DNA of 64,000 bases from Octopus bimaculoides (GCF_001194135.2 NC_068986.1:6732373-6796372); one strand, 5' to 3'. Numbered from the stretch's first letter, positions 15,504 to 43,884 are shown. The notes: generated from the sequence alone by a model not told the origin. A program made the numbers and translations.

Positions 15504-15522
15504 CCTAGCAACCGTTACTAGG
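15504..15522. promoter_or_regulatory. Paired RFX/X-box half sites upstream of MNS1
   Basis: CCTAGCAAC-C-GTTACTAGG is a near-perfect palindrome made of two RGYAAC-containing half sites, about 107 bp upstream of the MNS1 ATG. Confidence 0.6.
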
Positions 15523-18611: not shown

Positions 18612-18712
18612 TGTAATCTGGATATAGAAGCTGGAAGTTTTGAAGCAGTTTTCCAGTCAAATTCTTTCTCTTTGATTTTCAAAGAGATATTCACATCAGC
18701 AGGACAGCTAAT

Positions 18713-19986
18713 GGATCTTTTCTGTTTGGCTTCCAATTTTGAATCTTCAATTTCTGTTAGAATTAATTTCATATTCAGTATAATGATATACTTTTATATG
18801 CTGAATGCCATGAAAATCATTTTTGCCATAAATCAATAAAGAGTTATTAGCTATTAAATTCTGAAAATTTTGGGTAATTTTAGCCAATCGTAAGCCACAG
18901 ACACATTCATGCCTGCTTCCATAGAAACAAGCCAAACATGAGAACTCTTGAGAAAGCACATGTTGATTAATATTCCAGTCATTGAGGTGGTTGTCGAATG
19001 TGCTAAAAAAAGCAGCCAAATAGGCATTAAATCATGCACCAGAAGGGGATGTGGTTTCGTACTTGCAAGAAAAGGGTGCTATACTCAAAAGAAAATTATG
19101 CAACATGAAGAAGCATTTTAAGAGCACAAGAAAATGTGGTGGGAATATATCTTGGCGATGCTTGTATCAAGGATGCATAGAGTTTGTGCCAGTGAGACTG
19201 TAGGACTATAGTGTTTTTCCTCATGGGTTAAGGAATTGACTTCAGTATGGTTTTGTGGTGAAGAAGTGGGGATAAACCATTGCACAGCTATTGATTATAA
19301 CAACTATGTTAGGAAAGTATGTGTGGAGGGCCTGCCTATCATCCAATTAAAGTTGGTGGTCTTGGGAGGATTGTTGAGATGTTTGTTTTTAAAAATATAT
19401 AATTTGTAATGTGCCATTTTGTTCTTGGATAAATCTTTTAAGTTTGTGCTATAAGTTTCTTATTTTGAGAAATGTTTAATTTGTAATGTGCTGTTTATTG
19501 CATTAAATGCATATTGAATGCTTAAAACTACAAAATACATGTTGTTCACTCGTTTTTTTGTTATTGAGGTGGTTGTCATCTGTGCTAGAAATCACAGCTA
19601 AATAGGTCTTAAATCACCCCCCACCAACAATTTGGTGGTGGGGGGGGGCATAGTTGTATGAATTCCTGCATGTAGACTACAAATTTGCAAAACTTTTCTG
19701 AAAATTTCAAGAATTAAAAAAGTTATGGGGGGTTTTATATGTTGTGCATAATTCATTTGTTTACAGTTTCATATAAAAACATAAGTGCTACTTTCAGGAT
19801 GTTGACAAAGTGTGCAGTCATGCATAAAACGATATCTTCCAAATCCTGTTTACTAACTAAGCGAAAATGATCAAACTGCTATAGCTCCAGTATTTCAGCT
19901 TGTAAAATAACATTAACGTACCTAATTTTAAAATTTTCAATAAACTTTGATTTTTGAAATCTTGGCAGCCAAACAGAAAAGATCTT
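18713..19986 (+). mobile_element. Merlin (IS1595/ISXO2-like) DNA transposon remnant
   Basis: Inverted ends GATCTTTTCTGTTTGGCT(T/G)CCAA. The internal frameshifted peptide SWVKELTSVWFCGEEVGINHCTAIDYNNYVRKVC...PIKVGGLGRIVE resembles Merlin DWxNxxREVC...IGGPGxIVEIDE. Confidence 0.72.
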
Positions 19987-20169
19987 ATGATGGTACATGC
20001 TCTTTCTTGTTCATCCTAAACAACAATATCAGACCTGTTATGCTTACATTTGACAGATGCTTTGATGGGAATGTTCCACCACAATTCCTTGTGCTGATTT
20101 TTGTGTACTTATTCAATAACTGGGACTCTCCATATTTATTCCAGGACAGTCTTTTTTTAAATGGTGTTG

Positions 20170-20400
20170 TATATTGTTTTCACATAGGGAGGTAGTACCT
20201 TGATGACATTTTTGGGCAGCTGCTAATCATATGTGTGATGTTTTCCACAAAAATATGACATAATCTACATTTTTGCTTGTCTCTTGGAACTTTTTTGTTG
20301 AGTATGTATGTATGCATGCATGTGAGGCATAATGTATATGTGTTATTATTAACTTCGATTTCTAGATTTCTTGTCAATGGATAAAGTGCTGGTTTCTAAC
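20170..20400 (-). mobile_element. R4/NeSL-like non-LTR zinc-knuckle fragment
   Basis: KCRLCHIFVENITHMISSCPKMSSRYYLP matches the CRxC...ExxxHxxSxC CCHC motif of RLE elements. Confidence 0.6.
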
Positions 20401-22749: not shown

Positions 22750-23076
22750 ATGGGTAAAGATTTAGATATGGATACCCTGACGGCCTACAGTCATTATTTA
22801 CATGGAAGAATTAAAGAACAGTTAAACTCTTTGAACATAGGACCTGGTCGGTTTTATTTTCTGTCTGCAGTATCGTTCTTCATTTTGGGATTGATTTGCA
22901 TGATAGTTGGCATTTTGGTTATTACCCTCCGACATCGTCACGTTTATTTAATCAACTTTGACTACAAGTTTCTTGGACCTGGATTCATTGTTATCTTCAT
23001 TTTGTGCTTTGGAATAGGAACTCATTTATTGGTTCACGCAAAAGAAGTAACCAACAAATATCGTCGTAAACTTCGA
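22750..23076 (+). CDS. Unrecognised 2-TM membrane protein, coding exon 1 (109 aa)
   Basis: ATG...CGA|gtaagt. Two hydrophobic spans (FYFLSAVSFFILGLICMIVGILVITL and FLGPGFIVIFILCFGIGTHLLV) are followed by basic KYRRKLR. Confidence 0.85.
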
Positions 23077-24590
23077 GTAAGTAACATTTAAATTATATCA
23101 TTCAAACTCATTGTTTAAATTGAAATCATTTATATAGTAACATGAACGTTTTGTACAAGTTTCATGGCATTAATTTAAGCATTTTGAATATTTTTAAAAC
23201 TTTCGTTGTCTTCCAAAATCCTAATTTTTATGTTAGATATTCTGTATAAATTCTCACTAATGTATAAATTAGGCTCATATATATAATCTCAATAGGCCCG
23301 ATTTTTAAGTTACTTGATTCCTGAAGGAATAGGTCTGTCTCTATGCGCTAAAATAACTGTTCGAAACAGATTTAGAAAGTCACTTAAGTCTTATATTATA
23401 GGACACATGATTTATGGGATAGACATGTGTTTCCGATTTTACTTCCACTATATGGCATTTTCAGAAAATGTCTTCTATTTATAAACCGTAGGTCAACTCT
23501 GGACGGAAATTGTGTCCATCTGGTGGACTGTACTAGTTTTTGAATGGTATCCTTAATTTGTTGCATGTTTTAATACCATAACTTGGTAAGGAGACCAAGT
23601 ACGCAATTTATTCCCCAAACTCAGATAATCTGCAAAATAAATAACTTCACAACTGCTCTTTTCTTTTAGTGAAACTAATATATATATAGGCATGGAACGG
23701 GTAGAAATCACCCGACCTCAGCTAATACATATAACACTTTTACCACCACTAGTTTCTTCCTACAGAACTTATCCTATATGGTTTCACATGGCTGTTGTTT
23801 ATCGTGATATCCATTGGATTCAACAGGTTCATGAATAATTTAATATTTCAAAGTATTGGATACTTTTTCAGGGAAATGTTTCTGTAAAGAGAATAACCAA
23901 ACATGACGGAAACTATGAAATGTTTCTAGTTTCTGTAAATACAAAAGAGAAACAGATTTAATTTATTATGTATAATATGAAGCAAATTAAGTAAATATTG
24001 TGTGAATATAGAGCAAATAAGGTAAACGTATTGTAACCGTTTATATTTAATGTTCTTGATCTTGGGTATAAAACGGGAGCGACAAAGCAACCGAAAATAA
24101 CTTAATTCCAAAATAACTGGCGAAAAGGAGCAAAATTATTTTTTAAGTTTTATTTTTAATAATATTGAACTTCATTTAAGATCCGTCAGTTACCTAACAT
24201 CCTACCTCAAAGTATGGAGTGGATTTCTTCAACTCCATTAGCAAGTTAAAGATTTCGAGAGCCTTCTCAATCAGTGGAAATGTCTTTGTATGTGGTTGAA
24301 TTTAAAGAAGAATCACTTATAATTAATCTCTCATGAACTGGTTTAACAATACTATTCCCCTCACAATATCCAATGACAATTGAATTCACAGAATCTACAA
24401 TTCGCTGATTCGCTAAGTGTTAGGTATCTTTAGCTGATGTCCTTCAGGAATTCTTCTATATCTTATGTTCATTGTATGTGTTCAACAGTTGTTATATTGA
24501 TAATTGTAAGAGAAAGCTATCCTGTTTATAGCTCCCTGGAAGATCGCCACCCCATTTGTTGCTCAAAACAGGAGCCTCAAAAGCTATATA

Positions 24591-27500
24591 CTATCAGACT
24601 CCTCCTGCGACGCTGGTGCTAAGTACTTTTCAAAGGAAAATTGGAAGACGGCATATTTAAGCATTTAGTTCTATATATTGTTTGACTGTGTGTAATTTAT
24701 ATGCATTTACTTCTGATGCTTCCGTCTGATATGGGAAAAATAGTAAAAGTATTTGAACGTATCCCGTTATATGCATGCATGGCGATAACGTACCCACTTC
24801 AGCCTTGGCGAATACGTAGCACTTCGCTGTAGACAATGTTTCTTGTCTTCCCCCGATGTATTAATGCGACCAGTCTGTCTCTACTGCCAACTCTGGAGCA
24901 TGCAACGTACAACTGGCCGTGGGAAAAGCAAGGCTCTTCCAAGAGAAGTCCGGCCACAGAAATAGTCTGGCCCTGGGACTTGTTGACAGACGTGGCGAAG
25001 CTGGGCTGGAACAGAAATTGTAGTCTTCTGAAGGCGAAAGGTATGTCTGCTCCCGAGGGAGTAAGAGGAATCCTAGGAATGAATACATCCTCACCTTTTC
25101 CGCATCCGGATAGGATGGTTGCCTCGACAACATGTTTCATCATTTTTTTTATAACCAGACGTGTTCCGTTGCACAGTCAGGGGGTGGGGAGCTCCAAATT
25201 GCGCAGAAGCATAACCAGAGTTCCAACTTTAAGGTGGAGCAGATGTGGCAGTAGGCTTGGAGGGTCTAAAGAGTTGAGGAACTCTGTTGGGAAATTCACC
25301 GATTCATTTGCATCTACAGATTTGTATGCGAAGTGACTGCAACAGTTGATCATTGAGTTTTGTAACGGTCACGTTTTGCAGAGCCAGCACTGCTCTTTCA
25401 GACAGCCATTCATGATTGAGATAATTATATTTTAAATGGAGAAACACTTTATCGGTGAGTTCAACCAAAGATGAAACTGGAGTTGCGAATGTGTAGATGT
25501 CCAATTCCCCATCAGTATCAAGAGGCACTTTACCGTCGCCAAGTTTCAGAATGTCACTTGCAAAGTTTGCCGTCATTTGGTTGCCGAGCAATCGAGCCCT
25601 CATGTTGATTGTCAGGGTCAGTGACCTGACATGACATCAGAGCGGAGACAACATAAGGCATGCTTGAACCTCATCTGCTTGCGTGCCTTTGGGGATAACA
25701 GGAAGAGTTTGCCTAAAGTCACCTGAAAGCAAAAGCGTAACACCTCCCATGGGGGCTTCTCAACCCCTGATATCCTGAAGGGTTCTGTTTAATGTGTTGA
25801 AGGCTCCCTTGTGGGCCGTAGTACACCCATCCCCACAATAAGCTGACAGCGTTTCAGCACTTGGCCCTGGTCAGAGTTCTTGCTTATATTGCAGGTAGGT
25901 CTTTCTGACTTAGTTAAAAATTGAGGGACAACTTAAAGGTGGAGTGTGCAGTTCTGCTGCCAGGCAGCAAAGTTGCAGCAATCCCTGAAGATGCGACTGC
26001 AATCGCAATACTCTTTTGCATTCTGAGCCTCGTTAGAAAGGTTTTGCCTGTACTCGCTGGAGCATTAAGAAAAAACAAGCCACCTTTCCTGTGGTGCACA
26101 TGATCAGTCACAATAGTATAAACATGCTGTTGATCTGGAAGAAGCTTTGGTTCAGTTTCTAGGATGAAATTGGCAAGAGCATCTGTGCCCAGGAAAAAGC
26201 AACTTCGCCTGACGTATGAAGTCCTCCGATAAGTCGTCTTTAAATTTGAACCCCAAAGACAAAGGGTTGTTAAGTTCACAAATTTGCAGCATAACAGCAA
26301 ATAGAGCTCGTAGACGCTTAGGTGTCTGGGATGCAACAGCTTCGAATAACGTAGCTTCCCATTGTGCATCGCTTTCTAGCAAACCGCACTTGAGGCATAC
26401 TTCCCTGTAAGTGCTGCAAACAGAGCCATCAACAGTCCTTAAGTCATCAAACGACTGGGGCCCATGTACCTCATGTAACAGAAGACGAAGATAAAAGCAC
26501 TCGTGTTAGCTCGGATGCACCGTGTAAACTCTCACAAGACAGCTGTCAAACTTTACACCAGATTGTCCGTCAACCAGCTGGCCTGACTTTCTGCGCTCTC
26601 ATTGTTGCTTAGTCCATGTGTAGTAGGATGGAACCTGAGAATAAAGCAAAGTTTTTGCAAATGGGTCGTTCCTGCACAGAGCGAAGAATGCAGTGAGAGT
26701 AGTTTGTCGAGGCTCTTCAACTTTGACTGTTCTCCAGGTGAACTTTGAGTTGCTCGATGGGTGGGTGCCTTTGGTGTATTGGAAAGCCGAAAATATACCA
26801 GAATGCTTCATTACTGCTAATATAATGGCCAACTTGGTATTGTAAGACCTTGTCGCAGCAGTTTTCCAGCTGTAGACCGAACATAGCAGCGTCTGAGCCC
26901 TTGTTGACATATTTGCAGATATACTTGAACTTGATGGAATGGCAAAACCCCACATTTATGTGGGCGCCAAACGTCTTTGAAAGAAGCGGTGAATACGGTA
27001 CAACCCATCTGTTGTCAACCTCATATTGTCCAATTTTCATGGTAAAGCCACCATCTGCAGATTGGCACCATCTGTACAGAGGGTATCCATCAATGCCAGT
27101 TTGTGTTACCTTCAGAAATTTTTTTGGAAACTTCTTGCAGCAGATATTGTTGTTCAAGCAAGGGGAGCCTAAATTGAATCCTAATCCACATGGCCCGTGG
27201 ATCATGGTCGCCTTGACTATTTCAAAGAGATGTCTGTCGGTAGATGGGTTTGGAATCTCGGCAGAGATAATCTTGTCAATATTGTTGGGAGGTATTTTTA
27301 GCGAGTGCCAGATTAGAATGTGAGCGTATGGTGGGCCTCTCTTTTGCCATTCAACAGTATACATATCACATCTAATGGGGCCAAATATTTGCCCTCCCTT
27401 AAGAAGCTCCATTAGTTTGATAAGCTTCAATCAAAAGACTCACACTAGGAGGTCATGACGGTCTTTTGCATGCTGGCCTGAAAACAATTCAGCTTCGATC

Positions 27501-30500
27501 TCCTTCCACGAAGGATTGCAGGTGAATGTAATGAACAAATTGGGCCTGCCGTAATGATGGACATAAGTCATAGCATCTTGCGTTCTCTCATGCATATACT
27601 GCGGACTTCCAGTGAAGGAGGATGGCAGAATGCAGAGTTTGCGTATGCTATCTGGTGTTGTGTCATTGATGAGGGTGTCTTGCAGATGAACGTAGCTGTC
27701 CAAACACAACTGCTTCTGGTGTGTTCGGATAAAACAGAGCCTCTCTAACTCCATTTTGGTGCACACATCCACAGCAAACTGATGAAAAAGTTCTCTTGAG
27801 TGGTGCATATAGTTGAAGGAGTTGTCACGAACCATGAAGTGATATGAGTAAAAATTCATGCAAGAAACCGTTTTGTTGGTGAACCTCTTCCGTCATGGCA
27901 TAACCTAAAAATGGAGGTTGTGGAACACTTAGCCCCAATCAGAAGGATAAAAGCAAGTGGCTGACAGGATATGTAAGTTTTTATGAAATAGGTAGTCAAG
28001 TACGAAGCCATAAGCACGTCTTAACAGAGAGATATCCATAAGGTGATTTAGTAGCAGTACAGTAAGCTGTGTTGCAATGGGAGCCAGCAACGAATCAAAT
28101 CACTTCTCAAAGGGACGATTAACATGTTTTCCACTATCCGCATTCGTAAGTGAATGTGAATTATCAACAGATAATGTCTAGCAGCTGTACCGTGAAGCCT
28201 GAGATAATGTTGCTTATCGATTTGTGAGGTAGAGGCGTTTGTTGAAAGTCCCTCTACCTATTTTTGTCAATGAGAGGTTGTACTTGATGAATGTGTTCCA
28301 ACAGCGTGAGGTGAAATGGCAAGGAGCAACAGTAGATGTAATAACAATTTTGTGACTTACCAACTGCAGCTGGATTAAAGGAGGAAGGGGTAGCTTTGAG
28401 AGGAGAGGTTGCAGTGAAAACGTTGGAACAAGACCGTGACTGGTGTTAGTGAAAACAAAAGGGGTTTTTAAGTAAGATGCAGTCATCGCTCGCAAAAACA
28501 CAAGAATAAACCAATGATGCAACCCTACCCCATTGTAAGAGGATAAAAGCATGAAGGGGTAAGCAGAACTGTTGGTGTGTTAGTAAGGGATGGCACCTAG
28601 TTGCTGTTTTGTGAGTAATGGTCAAATACTTACCGAGTATCCGAACAATATGGAGAAGTGTTGCCTTGAGCTGAGGCAAAAGAACAGGTGGTCCCACTTG
28701 GGCNNNNNNNNNNNNNNNNNAGACAATGCGTGGAAGTAATTCAGGATGTCTGATAGCAATTTGAAGCATGATTACAGAACGTGCGTCAGTGCGGAAAATC
28801 GGCATGGGCTATTGTGTGAAAGTCGGAGGGGATGGGTTAAATTTAGGTATCAACGTGAGGGGTAAAAAGGCACGGTTACAAACGGCAGCAGGAAGCAGGG
28901 TGCGGGGGTGTTGGAGCACAAATGAGGGGCGACAAACTGTAAAAATGAAGGGTTTCCGGGGCTGGGGAGAATTGGAACCTGTGTTGAGTGCAAATAGAGC
29001 AGGGCGTTTACGGCTGCAGATGATGGTTTGATGGCTGTTTCAATCCATCTAAGAGACCTACAAAAGGATACAACCGATTGTAAGACCACGTCGGCAGGAA
29101 GTGAGTTTATGTATGAAAGTAAGGACTTTTCAAGCAAACAGTATGAGGTCATAATAGCATGTTTACAATAACAGAGTGGCAAATGGAAAAGTCACAAAAA
29201 CAATGTGAGGCTGTAGGTAGGTACTGACAAAGTATGAGAATAAGAAATGGTGAGCATAACAAAGTCAAGTGTCCGTCATTGTGTGCGTGAGCAGGCGATA
29301 TGAGTATGAGTAAAGAAATAGCTGTTATAGTGGATCCCTAGCGTAAATAAATCTGAATAATCTGGTGTCACATCAAATGCTGGACCAATAAACACATTGA
29401 TTAAGTGGTACGCAGCTTCATTGTGCTTCTGTAGTTCAGGTTCAGTCTTCCGGTCATCTGCTGAGTACCGCGACGCCATGGAACTCTTTGGGTCAAACTG
29501 GAAATGCGGACCAAGTTTGGTTGAAATCGGATGACTTTTTGAAAAAAATCGATAATTATTGACCGAGTTTTTGTGAAAACTGAACATTGATCAAAGCAGT
29601 TGTTATGACTAAAACATGCCTCAGAACATACCTAATGCATATCTGAAATTTCAATCGAATCGGTCTGGTGGTTCAGCGGTTTGGCCTTGCTTCACCCAAA
29701 AGCACTTGTACATAGAAATTGTAAACAGCACAAAAATATAACTTTTTGAAAGGCAGCTTGGTATTGATTTGATTCAAAAGGTTACCAAGGTTATTGCTTT
29801 AACAATGTCACACTGCCCCCAAACTGTCTTTTCTCAAGTGTAAGGCCTCATGTTTCTGCAGTTTCATGGTAATTTATTAAGACTTGGGCAACACTGGTTA
29901 CTACTGCTAGTGAAATGGATGAAGGAAGTAGTAAGTACTTACCAGTAGCTTGTGCAGTGCAGAGGCTGTTATTGCTTTAACTATCTCATGTTACACATAG
30001 AAATTGCTTTTGTTTATTGCAATGGAAAGCCTCAGTGCCAGATGTTTACTGTTATTGGCAGTGGCTATTTTGAGGTCACGTGGGGTCAAAATGTGTGTGC
30101 ACACCATGGTGGAGATTAATTGTTTATGCATCAGAGAAGGAATGGGGTCAGTGTTCTGAGAAAAACAAATCAGGAGCTACCTCAACAAAGGCATTTTGTT
30201 CAAATGTGTGTTTGTTGAATTGTGCTCAAACATAGCGCAATTTAATGAAATAAATCATGGCATAAGACTTGTTGGTTGAAAATGCATTCATTTACCGCAG
30301 TTTGGTTTAAATCAGTTCAATGGTTCCAGCGTTATGGCCTGCCTTAAAGGCATTTTTTGAGTCAGTTTTTCCCATGCTGTGCTCAAATGAAATGAAATTT
30401 GAAAAAAATAACGAAACGAAAAACCTTGGGTAACAATGCATAGGTATATCAAGTTTGATCAAAATCAGACGACTTTTTGAAAAAAATCGATAATTATTGA

Positions 30501-30635
30501 TTGAGTTTTTGCGAAAACTGAACATTGATGGAAGCAGTTGTTATGACTAAAACATGCCTCAGAACATACCAAATTAATGTCTGAAATTTCAGTTGAATCG
30601 GTTAGGTGGAACTCGAGATATAAAACTTCGAACTT

Positions 30636-30686
<51 letters not shown>

Positions 30687-30704
30687 CTGTTTTATATATA
30701 TAGA
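24591..30704 (-). mobile_element. Decayed autonomous Helitron (RepHel) in intron 1 of the 2-TM gene
   Basis: Frameshifted pieces of the Helitron N-terminal domain (LPSSFTGSPQYM...YGRPNLFITFTCNP), HUH Rep (VEWQKRGPPYAHILIW; KYICKYVNKG) and PIF1 helicase (APASTGKTFL; NKSQGQT; FSHGQLYVACSRV). The 5' end is A|TCTATATATA at 30704. The 3' end is a degenerate hairpin plus ATAG|T at about 24591. Confidence 0.93.
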
Positions 30705-31228
30705 TAGTCTATGCAAAGAGCAGCTATGTCAGGAGTCTGACATTCTCCACTGCCAAATACCTCTTAAAACTTGTTCACAACTTCAATTCCTTAAGGCTAC
30801 TCTCTCTTTTATTTTATTGTCTGTGATTTTCTGATCTATGACACAGTTTCCACTGCCACATGCCAGTTTTACTAATTTCCTTTTCTGCTATTATTTTTGT
30901 ATGGTTTCTGGAAAAACACATTTTTGTTTCCCAGTCAATTTTTTCTCTCTTCTCTTTCTCTGGAGAAAAGGCAAATCACCTGAAACGTTATCTCTTTTTC
31001 TCCAGTATAACACATTTGATTTCATACTTGTGCTTTTTCATTTTTTTTTTTTTAATATTCTTCAATTTTTTTCACTCTTAATTTTCTTCTAAAATTCTGA
31101 AAGTCTATATTTATACTATTATGGAGAAAGCTGCTTTTTAAGTAGTTGGAATTATGCGTCTTTTACTAAAAGAATGCTATTATTTAAGCCTAGACTGTCT
31201 GAAAACCTTTTACAAATTCCAATTTTAA

Positions 31229-32030
31229 TATTAGGGTATTTGGAAAGTAATTGCATTTTTTCACCACTATGAAATATGAATCAATCAGTCATGTCAGAGT
31301 AAAGGTTGAATGAGCAGGAAGTGTCTTTCATAGTTATTTTGGTAATTAACCTCATGGAGGATAAGCACTTTATAAAACCACATAGTTGTCATTGCTTACT
31401 ATATGAGTTATGAAAGAAAAGTATTGCTACAGAAGCAGGGAGAAACATTTGTGAAGTGTATTTGGATGCCGTGAAAGTTCATACATATCAGATGTAGTTT
31501 AAAGATGGCAATTGTGACATTCCTGACAAACCTTGCTCTTGAAGACAACCCACTGTGAATGATGAGACTTGTATCAGATTTACATCAAAGTATCTGAGAT
31601 TTGGTGCAAAAATTTAATGTATCATGTTCAACTATTGACAAAACATATCAAGCAAATTGGGAAAACATGCAAGGGGGAATTTGGGTTCCACATAAGCTTA
31701 TACTGAACATTATATATATTCCACCATCTGCAGCAGTCTTTTAACCAGGAATAACAACCTGTCATTTTTTTATGGGTTTTGCATCACAACAGAAAATGAA
31801 AAAGACAATGATTATCATGTAATGAGAAGCCAGTGCCAGTAACAAAACCAGAACTCCATCCACAAAAATCCTTGCTTTATATTTGGTGGAGCATGAAGGG
31901 TATTGTCCATTATGAGCTACTAGAAGATGGAAAGAACAACAATTGCCAACAACTTGATTGTGTAAATGAAAAATTATGTCATAAGTGGCCAGAAAAGGTG
32001 TCAATGCATGGCCTCACTCTTCAAAACAAA
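31229..32030 (+). mobile_element. Decayed mariner transposon
   Basis: TA plus a TIR-like start ttagggtatttggaaagtaattg. KPELHPQKSLLYIWWSMKGIVHYELL resembles mariner KPxLHxxKxMLxVWWxxxGIxHYELL. Confidence 0.85.
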
Positions 32031-32299
32031 CTAAAGGAAAATAAATTCACATCCTCCATACTCACCTGGCTATCCTATACATAGTCATTTACTATGCTAG
32101 AAATAACAGGGATCACATGGGTTTCAAAAGTAATTTCTTTTCAGTATAATTGTAATTGAATCATAAAAACAACGAGGAGACAAAATCAAGATGCATGAAA
32201 TATGTTTCCCACCATATTTCTTATACATTAAATTCCTATTTAAATAGGAACCTGAAAATTATATCTAGAAAATTTCAATAAAAAATATTCGTTTTTCTG

Positions 32300-32920
32300 A
32301 AAGCCATGAGGAAACAAAATTGAGATGTGTAAATTATCTGAAATTTCTGGCTGCTGGGGGTGTGTACTCCATATCAAAGCCCTTCTGGCATCACTGCATC
32401 TACAATGCATTGGTCCTCTGCATTCTCCCCTATGGTGCAGAAGACCCTGGCAAAGAGGATTGAATGCTTCAATAGGGGCAGGGTGGGGACTGAGAACCAT
32501 CAAAAACATCATATGGTACCACCATATTTCCAATAAAGAACTGCATGTGCGCACACATCATCCTGCAGCCCCCCACCTCATAGTTGTCCATTGCATGTTC
32601 CAGTATGGATATGTTCTTTATCTCCTGGTAGATCATCCTACCAGGACTTTATAATTGCAGGCAGGAAGAGGCCTCATAGCAGACCCTGCCCCAGATGGCT
32701 GGATGCGATTGGGGAAGATATCCAGAGGCTCAAAGTTACCTTGGAGGATGCACAAGGCTTCTAGCAATGGAGAGCATTGGATCTGGTTGGCTCTACATAT
32801 GATGACACCTCTGGAACCACTAACTTGGAATGACCCCAGCCTCATCAAGCAAGAGCATAAAGCCAGCCAAGCCAGTCTCTCCCAAGATGTTTTCACCGCA
32901 TATTCTCATATAATAGTAAT
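32300..32920 (+). mobile_element. Old non-LTR RT C-terminal fragment
   Basis: KNIIWYHHISNKELH.RT...QYGYV...DHP.RT and PD.W.R remnants. Confidence 0.55.
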
Positions 32921-33314
32921 CTACATCATCTGAAATATATTTGTACAAACTATCATAAATACATATCTATTTTTCAGAAAGTTATGAGGAAAGAAATTTT
33001 GGCGGGGCACAATTCTGTAGTTATGCCCTAAATTTACTGAGCAAGTGAGCACTATTAGACAAATAAAGGATTCAAAGGAAAATTAGATGTAACATACTGA
33101 AAAATGACACACATTAGGAATTAAATGTGTAAATATGATAAAATTAGCAACCAGCAGAAAACTACCTGGTGGGCAGTTTTTTCTGCTGGTTTTATGTAAA
33201 TTAATGTATTAAAAAAAAAAATCATATGAGATTTCACAAACTTCTTGTAAGACCAAGTTAAAACAAAAAATTATTTTAATATCATTACATGTAAGTTGTT
33301 TTCTTCTTTCATAG

Positions 33315-33385
33315 TTCCGTGCATTAGGAGAATATGGTGTTGCCGTCCTTCACGTTTCACAAATTCAAAAGAAAGAACAACAAGG
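33315..33385 (+). CDS. Unrecognised 2-TM protein, exon 2 (71 nt)
   Basis: ttttcttctttcatag|TTC...CAA GG|gtaat. Encodes FRALGEYGVAVLHVSQIQKKEQQ(G); phase 0 in, phase 2 out. Confidence 0.8.
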
Positions 33386-33945
33386 GTAATATTCTTTTCA
33401 ATTTATGGAAAATGTGTATCAATAGATGAAAAGATAAATGAAAAGTTGAAGAAAGAATAACTTGATTGTTGAGATTTTCTTTTGCTAGAAAGAAAATTTG
33501 CTGAGGCATAGAATGCTTATTATTTTGAACTTTAGAAACAAAAAAGAGATGTTTTTATTCTTGGGAAAATGAGGTGGTAACATTAACAAAAATTATATTG
33601 ATTCTGGCACCTCTTCATGCAAATGTTAATTATTCTTCCCTCTAACATTTTTTTTATTATGCCTTAGAAAACAAAAACTCGTTAAAAACTGGTTTTTGGA
33701 TTTTTNNNNNNNNNNNNNNNNNNNNNNNNNNNNNNNNNNNNNNNNNNNNNNNNNNNNNNNNNNNNNNNNNNNNNNNNNNNNNNNNNNNNNNNNNNNNNNN
33801 NNNNNNNNNNNNNNNNNNNNNNNNNNNNNNNNNNNNNNNNNNNNNATTCACTTTCAAGATAAAGAAAGTAATTTGTATTCAGGAGTCAAAGCTGTACTTT
33901 CACAAAAGGAAAATTTCAAATACTCTTGGGTTAGTTTATTAAGGA

Positions 33946-33975
33946 CTAGCAGAGATACCCAGCATTGCTCGGGGT
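33946..33975 (-). mobile_element. Isolated Helitron 3' terminus (hairpin + CTAG)
   Basis: The + strand reads aCTAGcagagatacccagcattgctcggg, which is a hairpin followed by CTAG|T on the minus strand. Confidence 0.6.
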
Positions 33976-33993
33976 TAAAATGGTATAGTTTGA

Positions 33994-34025
<32 letters not shown>

Positions 34026-35302
34026 TATGTTGAAACATGTGATATGGGAAAGTGCAGCATTGATGACAAAACATTTGTGGAGTAAATGATGGGCTAATTC
34101 GACTAAGTTTGAAAGAAGACTACAATATGAGTCAAAAGAGGAGAGATAGCATGTCTGTAGGTCAGATGGTTAAAGTATGTTGCCTGTCAGTTAGATAGTC
34201 TTACTTTAGTGGTGGTCTTGGCTGTTAAGAGTGTACAATATGGTTTTCTTGATATACATTGTAATTTGTGTGTTTATGCTGTTGAAGGCAACTAGAGTTG
34301 CATGACATCATGGAAGAATGCTTTTCAGCCACTCTTTGTTCATAGAACTAAGTATATCTAGGACTACATGATTCAGTGTATCTTCTCTTATATTTAAGAC
34401 AATAGTTTGTGACTTGACAATATTTGGTTGCATTGTCTTTCAGGTTGAGCAACTTTATAAAGGCTCTTTTGCAAACTTGGGTTTATTAGTGCAACCTTAT
34501 GGTGCACTTTGTGGTTTAAAAATTCAGAATTAATAAGGGCTGAAGTATTATCTTGCTTTGATGAGGAAGTCTTTGTGCTCCAGTTTTGGTTTCGTTCATG
34601 AAACAACAAGAAATTGTGGGGTCTAGGATTTCACAGGGGTTAGCTAGAAGGTGTATTGAAAGAAAGCTTCCTTAATGTATAGTGACTTGTAATAACTGTT
34701 AACTTGGTCACCATTTTTTTTTTCCATTGAAGGATATTTTCAAGATCTCTGTAATGGAGGCAGTACAAGTCTTGTGTTATATACCTGTTGCATATAGAGA
34801 ATGCATGTGTGCAGAAGATTGAGGAGTGAAGAGGTTATTGGTATAAGAGTGTAAGTGATTAGAAATGCCATTAGAAAGCTTTCTTTAGTGTACAGCAGGA
34901 ATATGAACAGCAGTATAGAACTCTTGGTTCCCACAATGCTCTCTGCAAAGGAACTGTCTGGCTGGAAATTTTTGATCAAGAGATTAGATAAATGAAGTCC
35001 ATAAGCAAATAATTAGATATATAAAAGGGGGCCCTATACTCAGAAACCACTTCAGTTTAGGATGATTGTTCTTAGAGGTTACAGATCTGTAATATAGTTA
35101 GATGTGCATCGCACATAGGTTAAACTTTTTTTTACCTGAAATATCTGTCTCTCTAGACTGGAAGGGTTTGAAAAGGTTATTGCTGTCTCTCCTATCTAGA
35201 CTAAAATGTAAACATAAAAAATCTCCAGTGATTCATAAAACTGAGATGTAATTCTCTTTTACATAATGACTTTGTCTTATTAAATAATTTATTCTTTTTC
35301 AG

Positions 35303-35360
35303 ACATGATCTAAAATCAGGCCACCTGCAGCATGTTGTTTCTCCAACTCCTCGTGGAACG
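35303..35360 (+). CDS. Unrecognised 2-TM protein, exon 3 (58 nt)
   Basis: attctttttcag|A CAT...ACG|gtttgt. Encodes HDLKSGHLQHVVSPTPRGT; phase 2 in, phase 0 out. Confidence 0.78.
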
Positions 35361-38027
35361 GTTTGTATAATTCATTGTCTCATTAAAATGTTTTTTGAAA
35401 TATAATTTTATGCTTATTTTCAAATTACTCAAACATCAGTATATACAATTTTTATTTGTTTCTAATAGGTCTTTTTCTTGCGATAGTTTGTTTATGCAAG
35501 GTCAAACAAAGTTCAGGCTATTATCATTTCACTTTTTTTTTTTCTTGTCATATTTTGGAAAGTAGGATGAAGTTTGAGGGAGATACAGTTGCGAAATAGC
35601 AGCCAACACACTGGTCCACAGACTCGTCTCTTTCTACCACTACAATGTTGTCTGCTCTCTGATCCAATGTCACCTCCACTTAGAGACATAGATTTCTGAC
35701 TCACTTGTCTCTCTTTGTCATTAATATTGTGTTCACCATCCTAGGCACTACATTAACTACTGCTTCCTTCCCTGAACATTGGTCCTCTGGAATTCCTTTC
35801 CTGTTGCTACCAACTTCTGACTGCTCACGAGGAACATTGTGTTCATCTCATTAAACCCACTAAAAAGCCAATGCAGAGAGGTCTGCCCTGTTTATCTAGT
35901 CGGTGTTTCTAATTTTGGGATGAGGAATTGGAAACTGTTTTCTTTCTACTATCTTATTAGCTTACTGAAAGTCTCAAACCTGCAGAGTGCCATTTTTTTT
36001 TTGGTGTTGTATCTATTGGTAAAATTAAAATTGTTGGAACCCGTTACTACCTCACATCTAGCAACAGTAAATTATTCATTTACTCTTTACATGCTCAAAG
36101 GGCAGTTTTCTGTAGTCTTAACCTCTCTCTTCTACACAAACTCAAAAGTAGCCCATGTGGTAGTTTAATTTGCTAGAAATAGCAGGGATCACAATATATT
36201 CTAAGGCCTGTGGCATACCAATCAGCCATGCTAACAAATTGGCCCTTGATAGTTTCTTTTTTTTTGTATATCAGGGAAATTTAATTTTATTAAAAAAATT
36301 TTCATTTCACAAATTTCTGAAGAGTGAATTACAGCTAAATGTTATTTACACATTTGATTCTTAATTTGTGTACTTTTTCTGATATGTTACAAATTTTCGT
36401 GTGAATCCTTCATTCGTCCAATAGCATGCACTCACTCAATAAATAAATTTAGAATAGCAAGCACTAACAGACAGTGTTTGAATTTATGAAGAATTACATT
36501 GGCATTATGTTGACCTAACTTATCCACATAAAGGTCTTCAGTTTATTGTATAGGTACATATCAGAAGATTTTGTAACTTTATATGACTGAATTGGGAATG
36601 CACTAGTATGAACTGGAAAAAATCATATTGAAAAATTACTGGGGTTTCTTTTCCATTGACATATATTTGTATATTTTAGTATTAATAATTGTATACACAG
36701 TTGAACAAAGGCAGGGGAGAGAGAGAGATAGTATCTACAAAAGAAAATGAAAATTATATGCTGAATTGAAAAAAGATATATTTTGATTAAAATGGAACAA
36801 AATTTGAATTTTTAAGAATTTTGTAGACAACGGAAACTTTTAGTAATTGCTTTCTTTTAGTTACACAATTCCAATCCAAATAATTAAAAGCAGTTTTTTT
36901 CTATTGTAGTATAAATGCCTAGTATAAAATGACATCTAGTTTAAAGTTTACCATATTGGGATAGCATTCTTGATTTTGTTCACTTTTAGATGAAAATTTT
37001 TCAGCTTCTCATGCTCAGAGAATATTTCTTAAGGTATCGTTTATGACATCCTTTCAACTGCTACATTGCAATTATTTGATGATATATTTCTGGCTGGCCG
37101 ATTTTTCTAGTATACCTCATATTTAAATTTTGTTACAAAATATTCAGTTTCTTGCCCAAATCAGCATGTCATGGTTGAATGTAAAATAGCTAATAATTCA
37201 ATGTTACATGAAGTCATAACTATAGATTTTTGTTTGTAATCATTAAATTTTGAATTTGAATTTTTCATTTTGTTAAGTATGTCCATCAGTAATGTTAAGT
37301 TATTCCCCAAGTCTACTTTAAAGCAGATTTTGAGCCTCCATACACAGAAGTACTTTCCATTGAATCTTAGAATAGAAAATTTCTTGTCATTATTTTCACC
37401 AATCATGTTGATATTAATGTAGCTATATAAAAAAATGAAAAAAAAAAAAGAAAAAAAAATTTCATGCACTCAGAATCAAAATTCCCTGTATTGAAGCCTA
37501 CATTATGATTATTTTCTTCATAGGGCAATTTTGCTCTCTTATATGACTTATTTCCAGCTCTATGTAGTCTATTATTCTTAATGGATTTGTTGCTTTTAAA
37601 ATTAGCGTTTTCCTTGAATGTTTTATGTATTGGTCTTACAAGCTGTCAAATATTACTTTTTATTGGTCCTCTTTTGTGACGTTTATTGCTTAAAATGTTT
37701 TCCCTATCTTGTATTGTTGTGTTTAAGGAAAGGCATTGTTAGTTATTTGGAGTTGTAGGAGTTCTAGGAGTTCTAAACCTGGCATTTATATATTTTAGAA
37801 CAATATGATATTGATAAGTACTTGTTGCTTACTGGTATTCTGTTGTGCTCTGACAACATTAATTTCAGAATAGTAATCTTTTACACTAATCCATGAGAAA
37901 TAGTTGAACATGAGGTAAACCAATTAACAAGTAATGCCTGGACCTAGATATATAAAATGAGTTCAATTTAAATTTATGTAATATTCAATTAATTTCTAAT
38001 ATATTCTTTATTCTTGTTCTAATCCAG

Positions 38028-38563
38028 TCAAGACACAACCTTGGATCTCTGGGGGATGTTAGTAGACATAGTTATAGATCTGAAAAGTCCCGAGCATCTT
38101 CCCAAGATTCTATTGACAAACCAACTGGCAGAACCGTGAGAGGCCGAAGGGATCCACATTTTCAAGCCAGAGTCCAAGATTCTGACTTTGATGACAAAAG
38201 TGACAGTTCCAGGAGTCGAGATACCAGAGATGGACATAGTCTCCCTGGTGAAAGGTTTCAAAGTGCACCTAGAGGCGCACCTAGGGGAATGCCTAGAGGC
38301 ATGCCTAGGGGTATGCCTAGGGGTATGCCAAGGGGTATGCCAAGAGGTATGCCTAGGGGCATGCCTAGAGGAGCACCTAGAGGGGCACCAAGGGGTATGC
38401 ATCCTCATGGTTCAGCTCCACCATTTGATCATAGTTATCAACCTCAAGGAAATAGAGGTGGTCAAATGCGATTTCATTCTCAGCCTGGAAATCAATCTCA
38501 TCATAGAGAAAGAATTGAATACGACCCTCGAGGACGCCATGTTGAAACACATCAGGGTTCAAG
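38028..38563 (+). CDS. Unrecognised 2-TM protein, exon 4 (536 nt) with the (A/M)PRG x11 repeat
   Basis: ttcttgttctaatccag|TCA...TCA AG|gtttgt. The frame is open throughout and contains ORF-track 38136..38618. The sequence is R/S/D/G-rich and low complexity. Confidence 0.85.
38265..38396 (+). repeat. Coding 12-bp tandem repeat, 11 units: (APRG)2(MPRG)7(APRG)2
   Basis: Read directly as units of gca/atg-cc(t/a)-ag(a/g)-ggN. Confidence 0.97.
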
Positions 38564-40809
38564 GTTTGTAAAATGCTTTTTAATTTTTTCATTTGAACAA
38601 ATTAACAATGTAAATTAAGTTTAGATATACTGAATTAGAATTATGTAACCCAAGATAAAGTTATTTTTAATAATAAATCAGGACTCAAATTCATTTACAT
38701 TTACAAACTTTCAATGTTTTGAAGGCTACTCTGTTGAAAGTATTTCTTGTGAATATCTTAGTCTGTATTTTTATTTCATCATCATAATCATGTAACATCT
38801 GTTTCTCATACTGGCCTGGATCGGATGGCTTGACAGGATCTGATGGGTCAGAAGACTGCATTGTGTTCCAGTGTCTGCTTTGGTATGATTTCTATGGCTG
38901 GATTCATTTCTGATGCCAACGGCTTTACAGAATGTGCTTTTTTTTTTTATGGCACCAGCACTAGTGATGTTGCCATGTAACTCACAAAATTATTTTCTCC
39001 TTCAACTGCAATAGGGAAGGAGGCAGCTTTATGCTAGGAGAAAAATGTTAAAGTATAGAAGGGGTCAGAACAGAGTTCATGTTGTAGAGGAGATATATGG
39101 CTACACATTATATAAGAGTGGGAGGAATTGGTGGGGGACTGGAAAGAAGAAATTGTTGGTTATGAGGTGTTATGGTGGATGTTCAAAGTATGATGATGAT
39201 GAATAGAAGTGTGTGTGGGTAGAAGAGGGTGTATGGGTAGGTAGATTGGTGGGAGGGGACGAGTTGATTACATTGACCCAAGTGTTTCACTGGTACTTAG
39301 TTTAACAACTCTGAAAGGATGAAAGCAAAGTTGACCCCAGCAGAATCTGAACTCAGAATGTGAAGACAGACAAAATGCTTAGCTGCATTTTGTCCAGCAT
39401 GCTAACGACCCTGCCAGCTGATGATGATAATACAGTAGTGATGAGAATAAAGGAGATGATGTCTGGGTGGGTGCGAGTGCAGAGTCAGACATAATGAGAG
39501 ATATGTGGTGATAGGTTTTTGTTTCTTCTCCAAGGCCCCTAAGTAAATAGTCTTGTATAAATATATCTGGTTTTTGTTAAAAAATATTTGAAGATTAAAA
39601 TTTCTTAGAAGGAAGGTCATCTTCATTTAACATCTTTTTTTCCATGCTGGCATGTTGGGCCAATATGTCAAAATCGTAAAATAAAATATAATTTGTAAAA
39701 CAAAGTATTAGAATTTTAAAATGGTTTTTGTTGATCCACACATAGATTCAAGAGATTGCGTAAATCCATGATTAATAATTGACAAACATTTGACGTGTAT
39801 GTTTTATCCATTCTGCATTAAATAAAATATATTGTGATCTGAAAAGCAAATGTCTTGATTACAACCTGCCTACTGTACATTCAACCTTTAACCTTCTAAT
39901 TATTCTGTCAAATGTAATGCTTATTTATTCAGATAGCTTTGAGATCTTGATGGTGTGACTATTTTGAAAATGATGTTGGATAGGTGTGAGAGGCTGGTTC
40001 TGGCCAATTTGGACATAAAATGGGTAGGATGTGGAAAGTGTAAATGTTAAAGGTGATTAAATCTAATGAACTTCTTTCTAGGGAGTTTTAAAGCCAAAAC
40101 TATTTTAGAGTCTAATTAATGATAACTAACTTTCAATAATTCTACTTTTTATTTATAGTCTTCATCTCATGCAAGACTGAATCTTTCCCCATCTTAAGTG
40201 ATAACAAGCTAAAGATAGACAATAAATATTTGTATTAATACAGCAGTCCTCTTTCTTAAGGATATCCTCCATACCAAATTATTTAGGAGTGCAAAGAAAA
40301 GACAGTACAGACCAATGTTGAGGGAAGGGAACTTGGATCTTAGTATATCTAATCTAAAGAGACCCACACTGTCACAAATGCCAGCACTGTCTTATGATCC
40401 CATCAGACCATGAAACAATTTGTCTGGTCCACTTGTTTTGATCCTTTACTAAAGAGAAAGGTTTTTCATACATGCCTGATAAAGTCAAGGTTCACTTGTT
40501 TAATATTGACATTTCCTGGCAAACTCAATTAGCTTATCCAGTAGGGGTCTCACTAGTAAGGGATAAAAGTCTATATCAAATTGTGTATATCTAGCTTTAT
40601 ACCTGTCATTTATATTCTTAAACAAGTTTATAACAGTGTTGCTATTGACTCAGTACCATAGTTTAGTAGTTTCCATAATTCTATTAAGAGAGAAGACTAT
40701 GCTGATATAGTAATGAAATGGGTATGAATGAGGACAGCCACTAAAAGAAAGTTAAAGGCTGAATGTACAGTAGTCAGGTTGTAATCAAGACACTTGATTT
40801 TCAGATCAC

Positions 40810-41985
40810 AAAATATTTAATGTGGAGGGAAGCTGTGAAAGGGGTAGACCCAGGAAGACATGGCATGAAGTGGTGAGAAAAGGTCTTTAGATGCTGGGCC
40901 TCACGGAAGAGATGACAAGGGACCAGGACTGATGGCAATTTGTTGTAATTGGAAAGACACATCAAGCTAATTAAAATTGAGGCCATCCATACATACAGGC
41001 ATGTCCCTTTTTAGCCATGGCTTCCACTCCCTCTCCCAGCTGAAAGTTCGTCTTGCAGGTACCAGTGCCATGTAAAATGCACTTGTGCTGACGGCACATA
41101 AAATGTACCAGCACACTGAAGTGGTTGGCATTTCGTCCAACCCATGCTAGCATGGAAAGCGGACGTTAAACGATGATGATGATGATGATGATCTAGCAGT
41201 AAAGATGCCAAAACAGACAATTGGAGTCTGGACAGCTCTTCAGCTAACCAGCTCCTGTCAAACCATCCAATGCACGCCAGCAAAGAAAACAGATGTTAAA
41301 TGATGATGAGTAATTTTTTTTTTGGGGGGGGGGCTATTAAACTTATTTCAGTTCTTGCTGGGTTTGCAGGTGGGCTTCTTGCTAAAATTAGGTTTGTGAT
41401 CTTTTTAAAGTTATAAAAGCTTTCCTTTTAGGTAAGCACTCTAACCTATCTTCAATTTTACTTCTTTTAGCAAAGAATTTAGTGTCATCATTAATGCTTT
41501 TATAGCTATCTATATTGGCTTTCTTACATTTAGTGGAGGTACTATTATGTAGATCATTATTGATTTCATACAAGTTATTAGTTTTAGAGTTTTTTTTAAA
41601 GTTTCTAATATCAGATTTTTTAGTTAGACATTAAATTTCGTAAGTACTATAACCCTTTCAAGTTTAAGATTGCTTTCAAAAGGGGGCTAAATATTTCCCT
41701 GTATGTGGGTATTTATAGGTCTTTAAGCCATGGGTTTTTTTTTTTGCTAGTGGGTGATACAAGCTTGCCCATCTGTTGTACTACCAGAAGCAAAAAAAAA
41801 CTTATAGTAGTTTATATTTTAAATTTTGTCAGAGTGGTTGGCGTTAGGAAGGGCATCCAGCTGTAGAAACTCTGCCAAATCAGATTGGGGCCTGGTATAG
41901 CCATCCGGTTTCACCAGTCCTCGGTCAAATCGTCCAATCCCATGCTAGCATGGTAAGCAGACGTTAAACGATGATGATGATGATT
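40810..41985 (+). mobile_element. Cluster of RTE 3' fragments (about 40810-41310 and 41828-41985)
   Basis: Repeated 3' UTR/(GAT)n tails and a GRPRKTW-like remnant. Confidence 0.8.
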
Positions 41986-42489
41986 AAATATTTATTTCTC
42001 ACTGGATGGAGAAGGACTTTTGTTGTTCTCACTAATAATGGAACAGTACACTACACACAGTTATAATACATTAGTTTAACTGCCAATGAAAGCATTCAAA
42101 CTAGTTATTAAATGGTTCTATTTAAGGTGGAGTAGTATATTATCAGTTATCAGTTTCTACCATGGTTTTAAACAGCTCACATAGATTCTATTGTTTCCAT
42201 TTTTTTGTAATTCTAGTATTAGGATGTTGGACACCTGTTTTAGCTATTAGAAAATTGCTGTGTAAATGAATTAGCAAGATGGTTCATGAATAAGATTGAT
42301 TAAAAATTATTGGAAAGTCCTTTTTCTTTAGTATTGGGATGTTTGTTTCCACTCTTTAGCTCTGCTAAACAAATTCAAATAAATGGTTACTAAATAACAT
42401 TTTCAAACTAACAGACATTATTACAAGCCTGTTGCATTATGATTCGAGTGATTTTATTTCTGAAAACTTCTTTTTTCTTTAATTTGCAG

Positions 42490-42556
42490 GCAACCTACTT
42501 CTTCAGATGATTCCAGAGATATAAAAGTTGATACATCCTCTGAGTCAGAAATTTAA
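42490..42556 (+). CDS. Unrecognised 2-TM protein, terminal exon 5 (67 nt)
   Basis: ttttttctttaatttgcag|G CAA...ATT TAA. Encodes (R)QPTSSDDSRDIKVDTSSESEI*; the phase-2 join is exact. Total CDS is 1059 nt = 352 aa plus stop. Confidence 0.8.
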
Positions 42557-43884
42557 AAGAATCACAAGACAATGTTTTTATTAAATTTTATTTAGTTTCA
42601 TACTTTTTAATGGGAATTTAAATACATTACCCACCACCATATTATACACCCCCCTCCAAAAAACAATATATATTGACCATTGTGTAATGCAGATATTTTA
42701 TATAATCAAATATAAAAGCAGTGTAAATATTTTTTTTACTCTCTCAATATTTTAAGCAACTTTTCTTTCAAACACTTTCCTAAAACCTGAAAAATATTAT
42801 ATTCAAGGATATTTGGAAGTTTTTGCTGTGAATTTATATAATTTGAGAACATTTAAAAAAAAAAAATTAAGTCTTCAAACAAAAACATTGAAGTGTGTGT
42901 GTATATACACACACACACACACACACAGTTTTTCATGCAATCATATATTACATAACAATGTGAACATTTTTTGATCACATGACACTTGAATTTATTAAAT
43001 TCTGTGAAACAGTATGTAGACATATCTTTATATTTTCATGACAATTTATATTTTTATAACTTCATCTGAAAATAATCATCAAATTCAAAATGCATTAAAT
43101 TTTCTTTCTAAATATCGGTCCTGGTTATATTTCCTTTGAAAATACTTGAATGCAATTTTAAAGAATTATAAATTGAAATTTGAATTTCCAGAATCTTAGC
43201 TGCAATGTCAATAGATAAAAATGATTTTACTACAAAACTCAGTGTTATGTATACTATTTTTCCTCCACCTTCTACCAAATCAAGATAAAAATTAGGGGTG
43301 TGTATAAAACAAAGTTGTAAAGTTTTCCCCCCCACTTTTATTAGGAAAACAATGTACTAAATCTATTTTATTTAATGTTCGTTGTCCATGGTTGAACAAA
43401 CTATCAATAAATTAAACACTTAAAAATGGCAACATTCTAGGCTGTGGGTGTATGAAACAATTTTGCTGTGGGTTGCACTTGAGTTTTGTAAGAGAATGTG
43501 ACATTATCTTGTGACGCTTAAGTATTGTAACACCCTTGCATTAACTTTGTTTCGCATTGGACTATTAATGTGACAGAAAAAAAATACATCTATTTTAATG
43601 GTCTTTAAATTAATTTGAGCTTCATGAAAAACATTAATAGTCTAAAAAATTTTATGCTAGAAAAACAGAACATAGGATTTTGAACAGAGAATTGTAAAAA
43701 ATAGGACTATTAATTGTAACAGGAAAAGGATAGTTAAATTCTTGAAATTAGTTTGGTGTATTCTAATAACTTATAATTATAAGACACTGCCTTGTTCAGA
43801 ACTGGGTGATGTGAGAAATTTCTCATGATGGACCTGGTTAAAGGTTTTGCTAATATCAAAGAAAGCAACATTGCTATCAACAAC

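Follow-up and report, generated by a model that had tools for sequence, protein, structure and literature searches.

What does a split reading frame with two hydrophobic segments and a long, repetitive Arg-rich end encode in the octopus genome, and does it have relatives? The stretch analyzed here, a window of 64,000 nucleotides (nt) from Octopus bimaculoides (GCF_001194135.2 NC_068986.1:6732373-6796372), had been described in an earlier note, made from the sequence alone, as holding an orphan gene for a 352-amino acid (aa) protein with a two-helix membrane hairpin and a disordered RG-repeat tail. The locus does hold a single complete gene, whose five exons encode a membrane protein of 352 aa. 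The gene is no orphan. By sequence comparison, the protein belongs to an unnamed, uncharacterized family without a Pfam model, which is conserved in Mollusca and appears to be restricted to spiralian animals. With this family and gene model in hand, the function that we favor, with moderate confidence, is that of a membrane-anchored adaptor or scaffold held in place by PDZ proteins.

The gene occupies positions 22750-42556 of the + strand. Its five exons (327 + 71 + 58 + 536 + 67 = 1059 nt) encode 352 aa, the four introns all have GT-AG ends with pyrimidine-rich acceptors, successive exons end in codon phases 0/2/0/2, and the frame is closed by a stop 16 codons 5' of the ATG. The model was rebuilt without the coordinates of the earlier note, with exons 2 and 3 placed by homology to the orthologue P0028, and the rebuild gave a protein of the same length. 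The track of open reading frames (ORFs) shows the gene only as fragments: a 113-aa ORF (22750-23091) stands for exon 1 and one of 160 aa (38136-38618) for the RG-rich piece. Exon 1 (22750-23076; 327 nt, residues 1-109) begins with the ATG at 22750, ends at a phase 0 donor (CGA/gtaagt), and encodes a helix at the N terminus, the two membrane helices, and NKYRRKLR, a basic sequence. Exon 2 (33315-33385; 71 nt, acceptor ttcatag, donor gtaata) encodes residues 110-132 plus 2 nt, FRALGEYGVAVLHVSQIQKKEQQ, and exon 3 (35303-35360; 58 nt, acceptor tttttcag, donor gtttgt) encodes residues 133-151, GHDLKSGHLQHVVSPTPRGT. Exon 4 (38028-38563; 536 nt, residues 152-330) holds the disordered tail in an open frame between an acceptor ending in tccag and the donor AAG/gtttgt. 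Exon 5 (42490-42556; 67 nt, acceptor tttgcag) encodes residues 331-352, RQPTSSDDSRDIKVDTSSESEI, and the stop codon TAA at 42554-42556; a candidate polyadenylation signal, ATTAAA (42580-42585, + strand), which is a pattern match only, lies 24 nt past the stop.

The assembly of the window (37% GC, AT-rich eukaryotic DNA) has five runs of N, two of which fall inside the gene. Intron 1 (23077-33314; 10,238 nt as assembled) contains a 17-N run at 28704-28720 together with a broken minus-strand Helitron, and intron 2 (33386-35302; 1,917 nt as assembled) contains a 140-N run at 33706-33845, 321 nt past the exon 2 donor. Both runs are intronic and touch no coding sequence, but they leave the lengths of these two introns uncertain.

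A test of this model comes from P0028, the closest full-length relative (367 aa; 59% identity over 228 aa, E value (E) 2e-98 by BLASTP). P0028 is encoded by intronless contigs of 1.3-1.5 kb from three sequencing runs. Because their 1104-nt ORF is uninterrupted, we read these contigs as probable spliced transcripts of a related species, judging from their structure and not from the type of run. By tblastn, P0028 residues 112-134 match exon 2 at 52% identity, residues 135-153 match exon 3 at 68%, residues 164-333 match exon 4 at 40% (E 1e-25), and residues 347-367 match exon 5 at 62%. All five exons are collinear with P0028, in the same order and in frame. The alignment of the two proteins is gapless across junctions 1/2 and 2/3, with the P0028 residue pairs 111/112 and 134/135 sitting on the junctions; it follows that no coding exon is hidden in the N runs. 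A comparison of exon 1 with a contig of a sister species gives 93.6% nt identity within the exon and ~84-86% in its flanks.

One could still suppose that the model is an artefact, in which the RG-rich exon or the small exons derive from another gene, a pseudogene, or repeat DNA. The lack of a same-species transcript, the tandem repeat in exon 4, and the presence of two N runs and a transposon in the locus would all fit such an error. The collinear, in-frame match of five exons to a single intronless P0028 contig speaks against it, as do the synonymous character of the repeat (discussed below) and the intronic position of the N runs and the Helitron. We therefore regard an artefact as extremely unlikely. 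Nor is the gene a product of chance, given the exon 1 homologues (E 1e-28 to 1e-62) and the solely synonymous differences among the MPRG repeat units.

What, then, is the encoded protein? Its conserved portion is a module spanning residues ~5-145. The module begins with a helix at residues 7-25 (family pattern D-T-x-x-A-Y-H...I...L-N), followed by G-P-G. Membrane helix 1 (residues 34-62; 22849-22935, + strand) is modeled by AlphaFold2 with a predicted local distance difference test score (pLDDT) of 95-98, and Kyte-Doolittle windows above 1.6 cover residues 33-63. At its outer end lies the most conserved stretch of the family, GILVITLRHRHVYL (residues 54-67; codons 22909-22950, + strand), which is invariant or nearly so across ten exon 1 homologues; its residues G54, L56, L60, R61, R63, and H64, plus Y66, are invariant in 13 molluscan sequences. 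A 7-residue link (63-69), unstructured in the AlphaFold2 model, leads into membrane helix 2 (residues 70-98; 22957-23043, + strand), which starts with F-L-G-P, carries a conserved Cys, and is covered by hydropathy windows at 71-98; in the model this helix runs from 70 to 106, extending into the cytosol. F74, G76, and P77 are found in 80% or more of the 24 sequences. The two-helix hairpin proposed in the earlier note is thus recovered both as two hydrophobic segments (33-63 and 71-98) and as two modeled helices.

After helix 2 comes a basic stretch (family A-K-R-R-x-N-x-Y-R-R-x-L; here HAKEVTNKYRRKL), whose NKYRRKLR is the stop-transfer sequence that the note had pointed out. Exon 2 then encodes a beta-hairpin (family consensus FRPIGDYGVAVVHKS, here FRALGEYGVAVLHVS), modeled with strands at 108-113 and 117-122, and the start of the helix that follows it; F110, G114, G117, and H122 do not vary among molluscs. 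Exon 3 contributes the motif L-K-S-G-(T/H)-x-x-H, in which K137 and G139 are invariant in molluscs. The five signature motifs of the family, GILV(I/V)xLRxRHVYL, F-x-G-P, N-x-(Y/F)-R, FRPxGDYGV, and LKSG(T)xxH, are all present in the window protein, the last two with substitutions. Modeled alone, the 150-aa module has a mean pLDDT of 85 and a predicted template modeling score (pTM) of 0.69, with helices at 5-24, 31-60, 68-104, and 121-136 and strands at 106-111 and 115-120 in the trimmed numbering, to which 2 is added to obtain the residue number in the gene model.

The relatives of this module were found in two ways. Exon 1 as a query retrieved nine homologues (E 5.5e-62 to 3.2e-28, 50-94% identity), all of them prokaryote-style ORF calls on genomic contigs, in which homology ends exactly at the window donor and gives way to a GTN (Val) codon and unrelated sequence. 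The nearest contig has 94% aa and 83.6% nt identity to the window. An exhaustive profile search of 1.84 billion representative proteins then gave 32 matches at E <= 0.001, 18 of them below 1e-30. The full-length relatives (252-384 aa) carry the module at the N terminus and share the same layout. They include proteins of bivalves (Crassostrea virginica, Tegillarca granosa, Ruditapes philippinarum, Mizuhopecten yessoensis, Sinanodonta woodiana), gastropods (Lottia gigantea, Littorina saxatilis, Gigantopelta aegis, Plakobranchus ocellatus), and a chiton (Liolophura sinensis), and weaker matches (E 1e-4 to 1e-6) come from the nemertean Tubulanus polymorphus, the annelid Owenia fusiformis, and the flatworm Macrostomum lignano. 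Closer relatives also exist among the matches without a source label. Every match with a source label is from a spiralian species, and a spiralian-wide profile run against a 5.8-billion set brought in no new taxa and no match with a Pfam domain.

Convenient types for the family are C. virginica LOC111121754 (XP_022318889) and L. gigantea LOTGIDRAFT_230724 (XP_009048100), and the window protein shares the module, the signature motifs, the intron, and the tail and C-terminal end of this family; L. saxatilis XP_070185432, G. aegis LOC121378504, and L. sinensis LOC135471218 are further examples. Over the 150-aa module, the window protein is 43-50% identical to the labeled molluscan members and 67% identical to P0028. 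It is more divergent than other members in the region of helix 3, where FRALGEYGV stands in place of FRPIGDYGV and LKSGHLQH in place of LKSGTTPH, and its tail repeat is entirely different, [A/M]PRG as opposed to the DRRGPP, RRPPDDRD, RPREGDD, and similar units of other members. The position of the first intron is shared as well. All 14 listed genomic read-through ORFs that reach the exon 1 donor, among them those of the distant relatives P0047, P0048, P0049, P0051, and P0057, have it at the same place, with GTN (Val) following in each case, and this shared phase 0 donor provides independent support for common descent.

Two observations on individual entries belong here. In L001, a contig of a related species (ENA ERZ21867824 ctg115095l, 153 kb), the 10 kb downstream of the exon 1 homologue (10376-20375) have no recognizable exon 2-5; exon 2 presumably lies past them, so that a long first intron seems to be shared. 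An entry attributed to the gregarine Digyalum oweni (P0087; EukProt EP00916 Digyalum oweni P006415, 381 aa) shares a 90%-identity cluster with L. saxatilis XP_070185432 and looks like contamination of the gregarine transcriptome by its periwinkle host.

With these data, the idea of a true orphan, a lineage-restricted gene without relatives, is next to untenable. Empty searches of Pfam, of PDB sequences, and by Foldseek would agree with it, and the tail alone retrieves only low-complexity matches. It is refuted by the 32 matches to the hidden Markov model and, among these, by full-length proteins with this layout from ten or more named mollusc species and from three other phyla. Clear orthologues occur in oysters, clams, scallop, limpet, periwinkle, sea slug, and chiton, and more distant relatives in Nemertea, Annelida, and Platyhelminthes. 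The narrower claim of the earlier note, that the protein has no named orthologue, does hold. Relatives are called "uncharacterized", "hypothetical", or, generically, "transmembrane protein", and none has a functional name; some bear misleading names that reflect low complexity (circumsporozoite protein-like, RNA-binding protein 12B-like, proline-rich proteoglycan 2-like). Our search of the literature for locus tags and run accessions found nothing. Members are thus already in public databases as uncharacterized predictions, and what is lacking is a Pfam model.

Could the family nevertheless be a branch of a known one? The earlier note had seen a loose likeness to TMEM200/DUF2371 (PF10177). The sole support for such a link is this general resemblance: two helices, an x-L-G-P sequence opening helix 2, where TMEM200-type proteins have K-x-L-G-P, and a broadly similar layout of hairpin and long C-terminal tail. 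The helix link here is 7 residues. PF10177 gave no match at E <= 10 to the window protein or to ten relatives listed individually, and is absent also among the 25 of 50 families listed for a scan of 25 members. No TMEM200-type protein was noticed among the 32 profile matches, several short ones of which were left uninspected. A divergent member of TMEM200/DUF2371 is accordingly a very unlikely identity for the protein. More generally, no Pfam family reached its cut-off for the window protein or 25 relatives, among the matches listed. The best Tetraspanin (PF00335) match, at 14.5 bits and E 0.029 against a cut-off of 32.1, covers helices 1-2 of that profile only, and the protein has two hydrophobic segments, not four. 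The other sub-threshold matches (holin, Sre, claudin, and others) are, with Tetraspanin, mutually inconsistent and of the kind that a generic hairpin gives. A profile search of the PDB had a best E of 0.8. Foldseek, run with the full and trimmed models, returned at best E ~0.8, with template modeling scores <= 0.44 and root-mean-square deviations of 6-13 A, to hairpins of pore-forming toxins and ExbB; we dismissed these matches because they are generic long helical hairpins.

The second conserved feature of the family is its C-terminal end. The window protein ends in SESEI, and its ESEI (codons 42542-42553, + strand) fits a class I PDZ-binding motif, with Ser at position -2 and Ile at position 0; Kir2-type potassium channels likewise have ESEI as their PDZ-binding end. 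An acidic, Ser-rich stretch followed by S/T-x-L/I/V/F closes all ten in-frame full-length members, the window protein included. The ends are SESEL in P0028, P0040, and P0041, SESIL in P0027, DESDL in P0030, DESEL in P0037, SESDL in P0042, DESSF in P0035, and DDSSV in P0039. On the sequence evidence, this conserved S/T-x-hydrophobic end has the pattern expected of a class I PDZ ligand, which agrees with the proposal of the earlier note. Four annotated models, from Ruditapes (P0029), Mizuhopecten (P0032), Sinanodonta (P0034), and Plakobranchus (P0038), lack an S-x-hydrophobic end, and P0029, P0032, and P0038 additionally drop the Arg/Pro/Asp composition part-way along the tail and become hydrophobic; these models look frameshifted or mis-spliced within the repeats.

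Between module and end lies the tail. As had been proposed, it is long and disordered: it comprises ~200 fast-evolving aa rich in R/S/G/P/D, and most of residues 153-352 have a pLDDT below 50 in the full-length AlphaFold2 model. Across the ten in-frame members the tail contains 13-28% R, 8-25% P, 5-17% D, and 5-14% G (16, 11, 8, and 12%, respectively, in the window protein), with few hydrophobic residues, and in all ten its net charge per residue is +0.04 to +0.07. From this shared composition and charge it follows that the conserved property is that of an Arg-rich, near-neutral polyampholyte. What is specific to the lineage of the window protein is a tandem array of eleven 12-nt units (38265-38396, + strand; period 12 and 85-92% matches by Tandem Repeats Finder), which encode APRG twice, MPRG seven times, and APRG twice. 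The seven MPRG units differ solely at synonymous third positions, which argues that the peptide has been maintained by selection in this frame. A homology search with the tail alone returned just low-complexity PRG/GMP matches, including the tails of Hsp70 and DnaJ.

The RG-repeat character of the tail, and with it the suggestion that the protein tethers RNA or condensates at a membrane, needs to be separated from these family-wide properties. The repeat is present (14 RG dipeptides, 11 of which recur at 4-residue intervals, with RGG once), and an RG/RGG motif cluster is defined by at least three RG at short spacing, so that the window protein has a cluster under this definition; RG conservation in the orthologues and an RNA-binding domain do not accompany it. 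Only 1-2 RG occur in P0037, P0039, P0040, and P0042, whose tails are rich in RR/RD/RP. The RG repeat is thus a local variant and not a hallmark of the family; what the family conserves is the Arg/Pro/Asp/Gly composition. A protein acting as a membrane tether for RNA or RNA-protein condensates through its RG tail would draw on these 14 closely spaced RG and on the high Arg content found throughout the family. The single RGG, the scarcity of RG in four relatives, the near-neutral polyampholyte nature of the tails, and the absence of any RNA-binding Pfam domain from the window protein and its relatives, among the matches listed, argue otherwise, and we consider such a tether quite improbable. Because the repeat is lineage-specific, the RNA/condensate idea stays speculation, neither refuted nor specifically supported.

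The features that the family does conserve, a membrane hairpin with its juxtamembrane module, an Arg-rich polyampholyte tail, and a PDZ-type end, suggest how an adaptor or scaffold could be built, and a small membrane adaptor of this kind is the mechanism that we find most economical. First, having two membrane helices, the protein would have its termini on the same side. We favor the cytosolic side for both (N-in/C-in) because the segment after helix 2 has 7 K/R against 2 D/E, and because a cytosolic tail is needed if the end is a PDZ ligand. Second, the SESEI end would dock into a PDZ-domain scaffold, fixing the position of the protein in the membrane. Third, the invariant hairpin and juxtamembrane module may contact a membrane partner or self-associate. 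Finally, the Arg-rich tail could be a flexible arm that offers multivalent contacts to acidic lipids, to SH3/WW/Tudor-type readers, or to RNA, possibly regulated by methylation.

A different reading of the same features is that the hairpin is the functional core, the protein being an auxiliary subunit or a pore-forming part in a channel or receptor, and that the tail regulates its trafficking, as in TARPs (transmembrane AMPA receptor regulatory proteins). Conservation is indeed strongest in and around the helices and the 7-residue loop (GILVITLRHRHVYL, FLGP, and the Cys of helix 2), and TARPs likewise combine an Arg-rich tail (PMC10642921) with a PDZ ligand. The protein showed no similarity to channel or auxiliary families, however, among the Pfam matches listed, in the PDB profile search, or by Foldseek, a pore-type motif is absent, and a hairpin with a 7-residue loop exposes little extracellular surface. 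We consider a channel or receptor subunit unlikely, if conceivable.

Several points weigh against the PDZ-held adaptor or scaffold and against the gene model on which it builds. First, neither the 352-aa product nor the ORFs of exons 1 and 4 were on record when looked up as exact sequences in the collections. Second, the collections looked up contain no transcript of O. bimaculoides. Third, junction 4 is backed by approximate collinearity only. Fourth, the AlphaFold2 alignments were shallow, at 24-25 sequences. Fifth, the short interhelix loop is itself basic (3 K/R and 2 H), so that the positive-inside argument depends on the C-terminal flank alone. Sixth, the tail motifs RG and PPxY are not conserved family-wide, and hence no specific reader domain can be named. 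Finally, an S-x-hydrophobic end could serve otherwise, for example as a trafficking signal.

The adaptor reading can be extended further. The family might be a spiralian-specific invention, a membrane hairpin around which PDZ-scaffold assemblies or RNA-protein condensates form, or by which they are held, at a specific membrane domain (for example a synapse, a junction, or the base of a cilium). It would act through its Arg-rich, possibly methylated tail and its C-terminal ligand, as an independent analogue of the TARP tail/PSD-95 pair. We put this forward tentatively, as a rather unlikely extension. If the PDZ-anchored, Arg-rich-tail design is true, the family would be an independent case of a disordered basic tail and a PDZ ligand organizing scaffolds. 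On present evidence, the protein is one more uncharacterized conserved membrane protein and no surprise. The family as delimited here, by motifs, intron position, a confident module model, and end motif, is sufficient to seed a new family entry, and its definition helps to correct the annotated models with apparently frameshifted tails.

The remaining elements of the window are of other kinds. Within intron 1, the degraded Helitron occupies 24799-27859 of the minus strand and is split into several ORFs, with the 17-N run just beyond it; Pfam recognizes Helitron_like_N at 27440-27859 (E 2.2e-35) and 26717-27430 (E 5e-6) and a PIF1-like helicase fragment at 25914-26369 (E 2e-17), all on the minus strand. 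Microsatellites of the (TG/CA)n type lie at 30635-30707, also in intron 1, and at 42880-42950, downstream of the gene; they translate as CVCV/HTHT runs, which dominated a first tblastx comparison with a related contig. Farther downstream, a 265-aa open segment on the minus strand (57374-58171) scores above the cut-off for the Tectonic domain (PF07773 TCTN_DUF1619; 32.9 against 22 bits, E 1.1e-7). It probably represents a large exon of a gene of the tectonic family, whose proteins belong to the ciliary transition zone; this gene would be a neighbor on the opposite strand. A 150-aa ORF at 6350-6802, also on the minus strand, has a sub-threshold endonuclease/exonuclease/phosphatase match (E 0.0027) and is probably an endonuclease remnant of a LINE-type (long interspersed nuclear element) retrotransposon.

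Outside its own family, the protein can be compared with three known systems, each of which resembles a part of it. The first concerns the repeat. The PGM motif is a substrate of CARM1, and proline-glycine-methionine-arginine motifs are methylated in CA150 (PMC6651691). Set beside the PGM-motif and RG-motif substrates of arginine methyltransferases, such as CA150 and the Sm proteins, the repeated Pro-Arg-Gly-Met units of the window protein resemble the CARM1-methylated motif. CA150 and the Sm proteins, however, are soluble, nuclear, RNA-processing proteins, whereas the motif here is on a membrane protein and is restricted to its closest relatives, and CARM1-like methylation of the PRGM units is only a lead.

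TARPs such as stargazin, which carry a terminal PDZ ligand, offer a parallel for the tail and end together. Their cytoplasmic tail, like the tail described here, is disordered with an Arg-rich region and interspersed serines; that of TARPs binds membrane (PMC10642921). TARPs differ in being four-pass proteins of the claudin family, and the only PMP22_Claudin match that we obtained was sub-threshold (E 0.24) and in one relative. For the overall design, a likeness is offered by TMEM88, a vertebrate protein with two membrane passes and a C-terminal VWV to which the PDZ domain of Dishevelled binds (PMC7339227, PMC6700443). Like the window protein as we favor it, TMEM88 is a small two-helix hairpin whose cytosolic C terminus recruits a scaffold through a PDZ-binding motif (PMC7339227, PMC6700443). 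The two have no sequence relationship; the VWV end is specific for Dishevelled, and TMEM88 has neither an Arg-rich tail of 200 aa nor the beta-hairpin module of the octopus protein.

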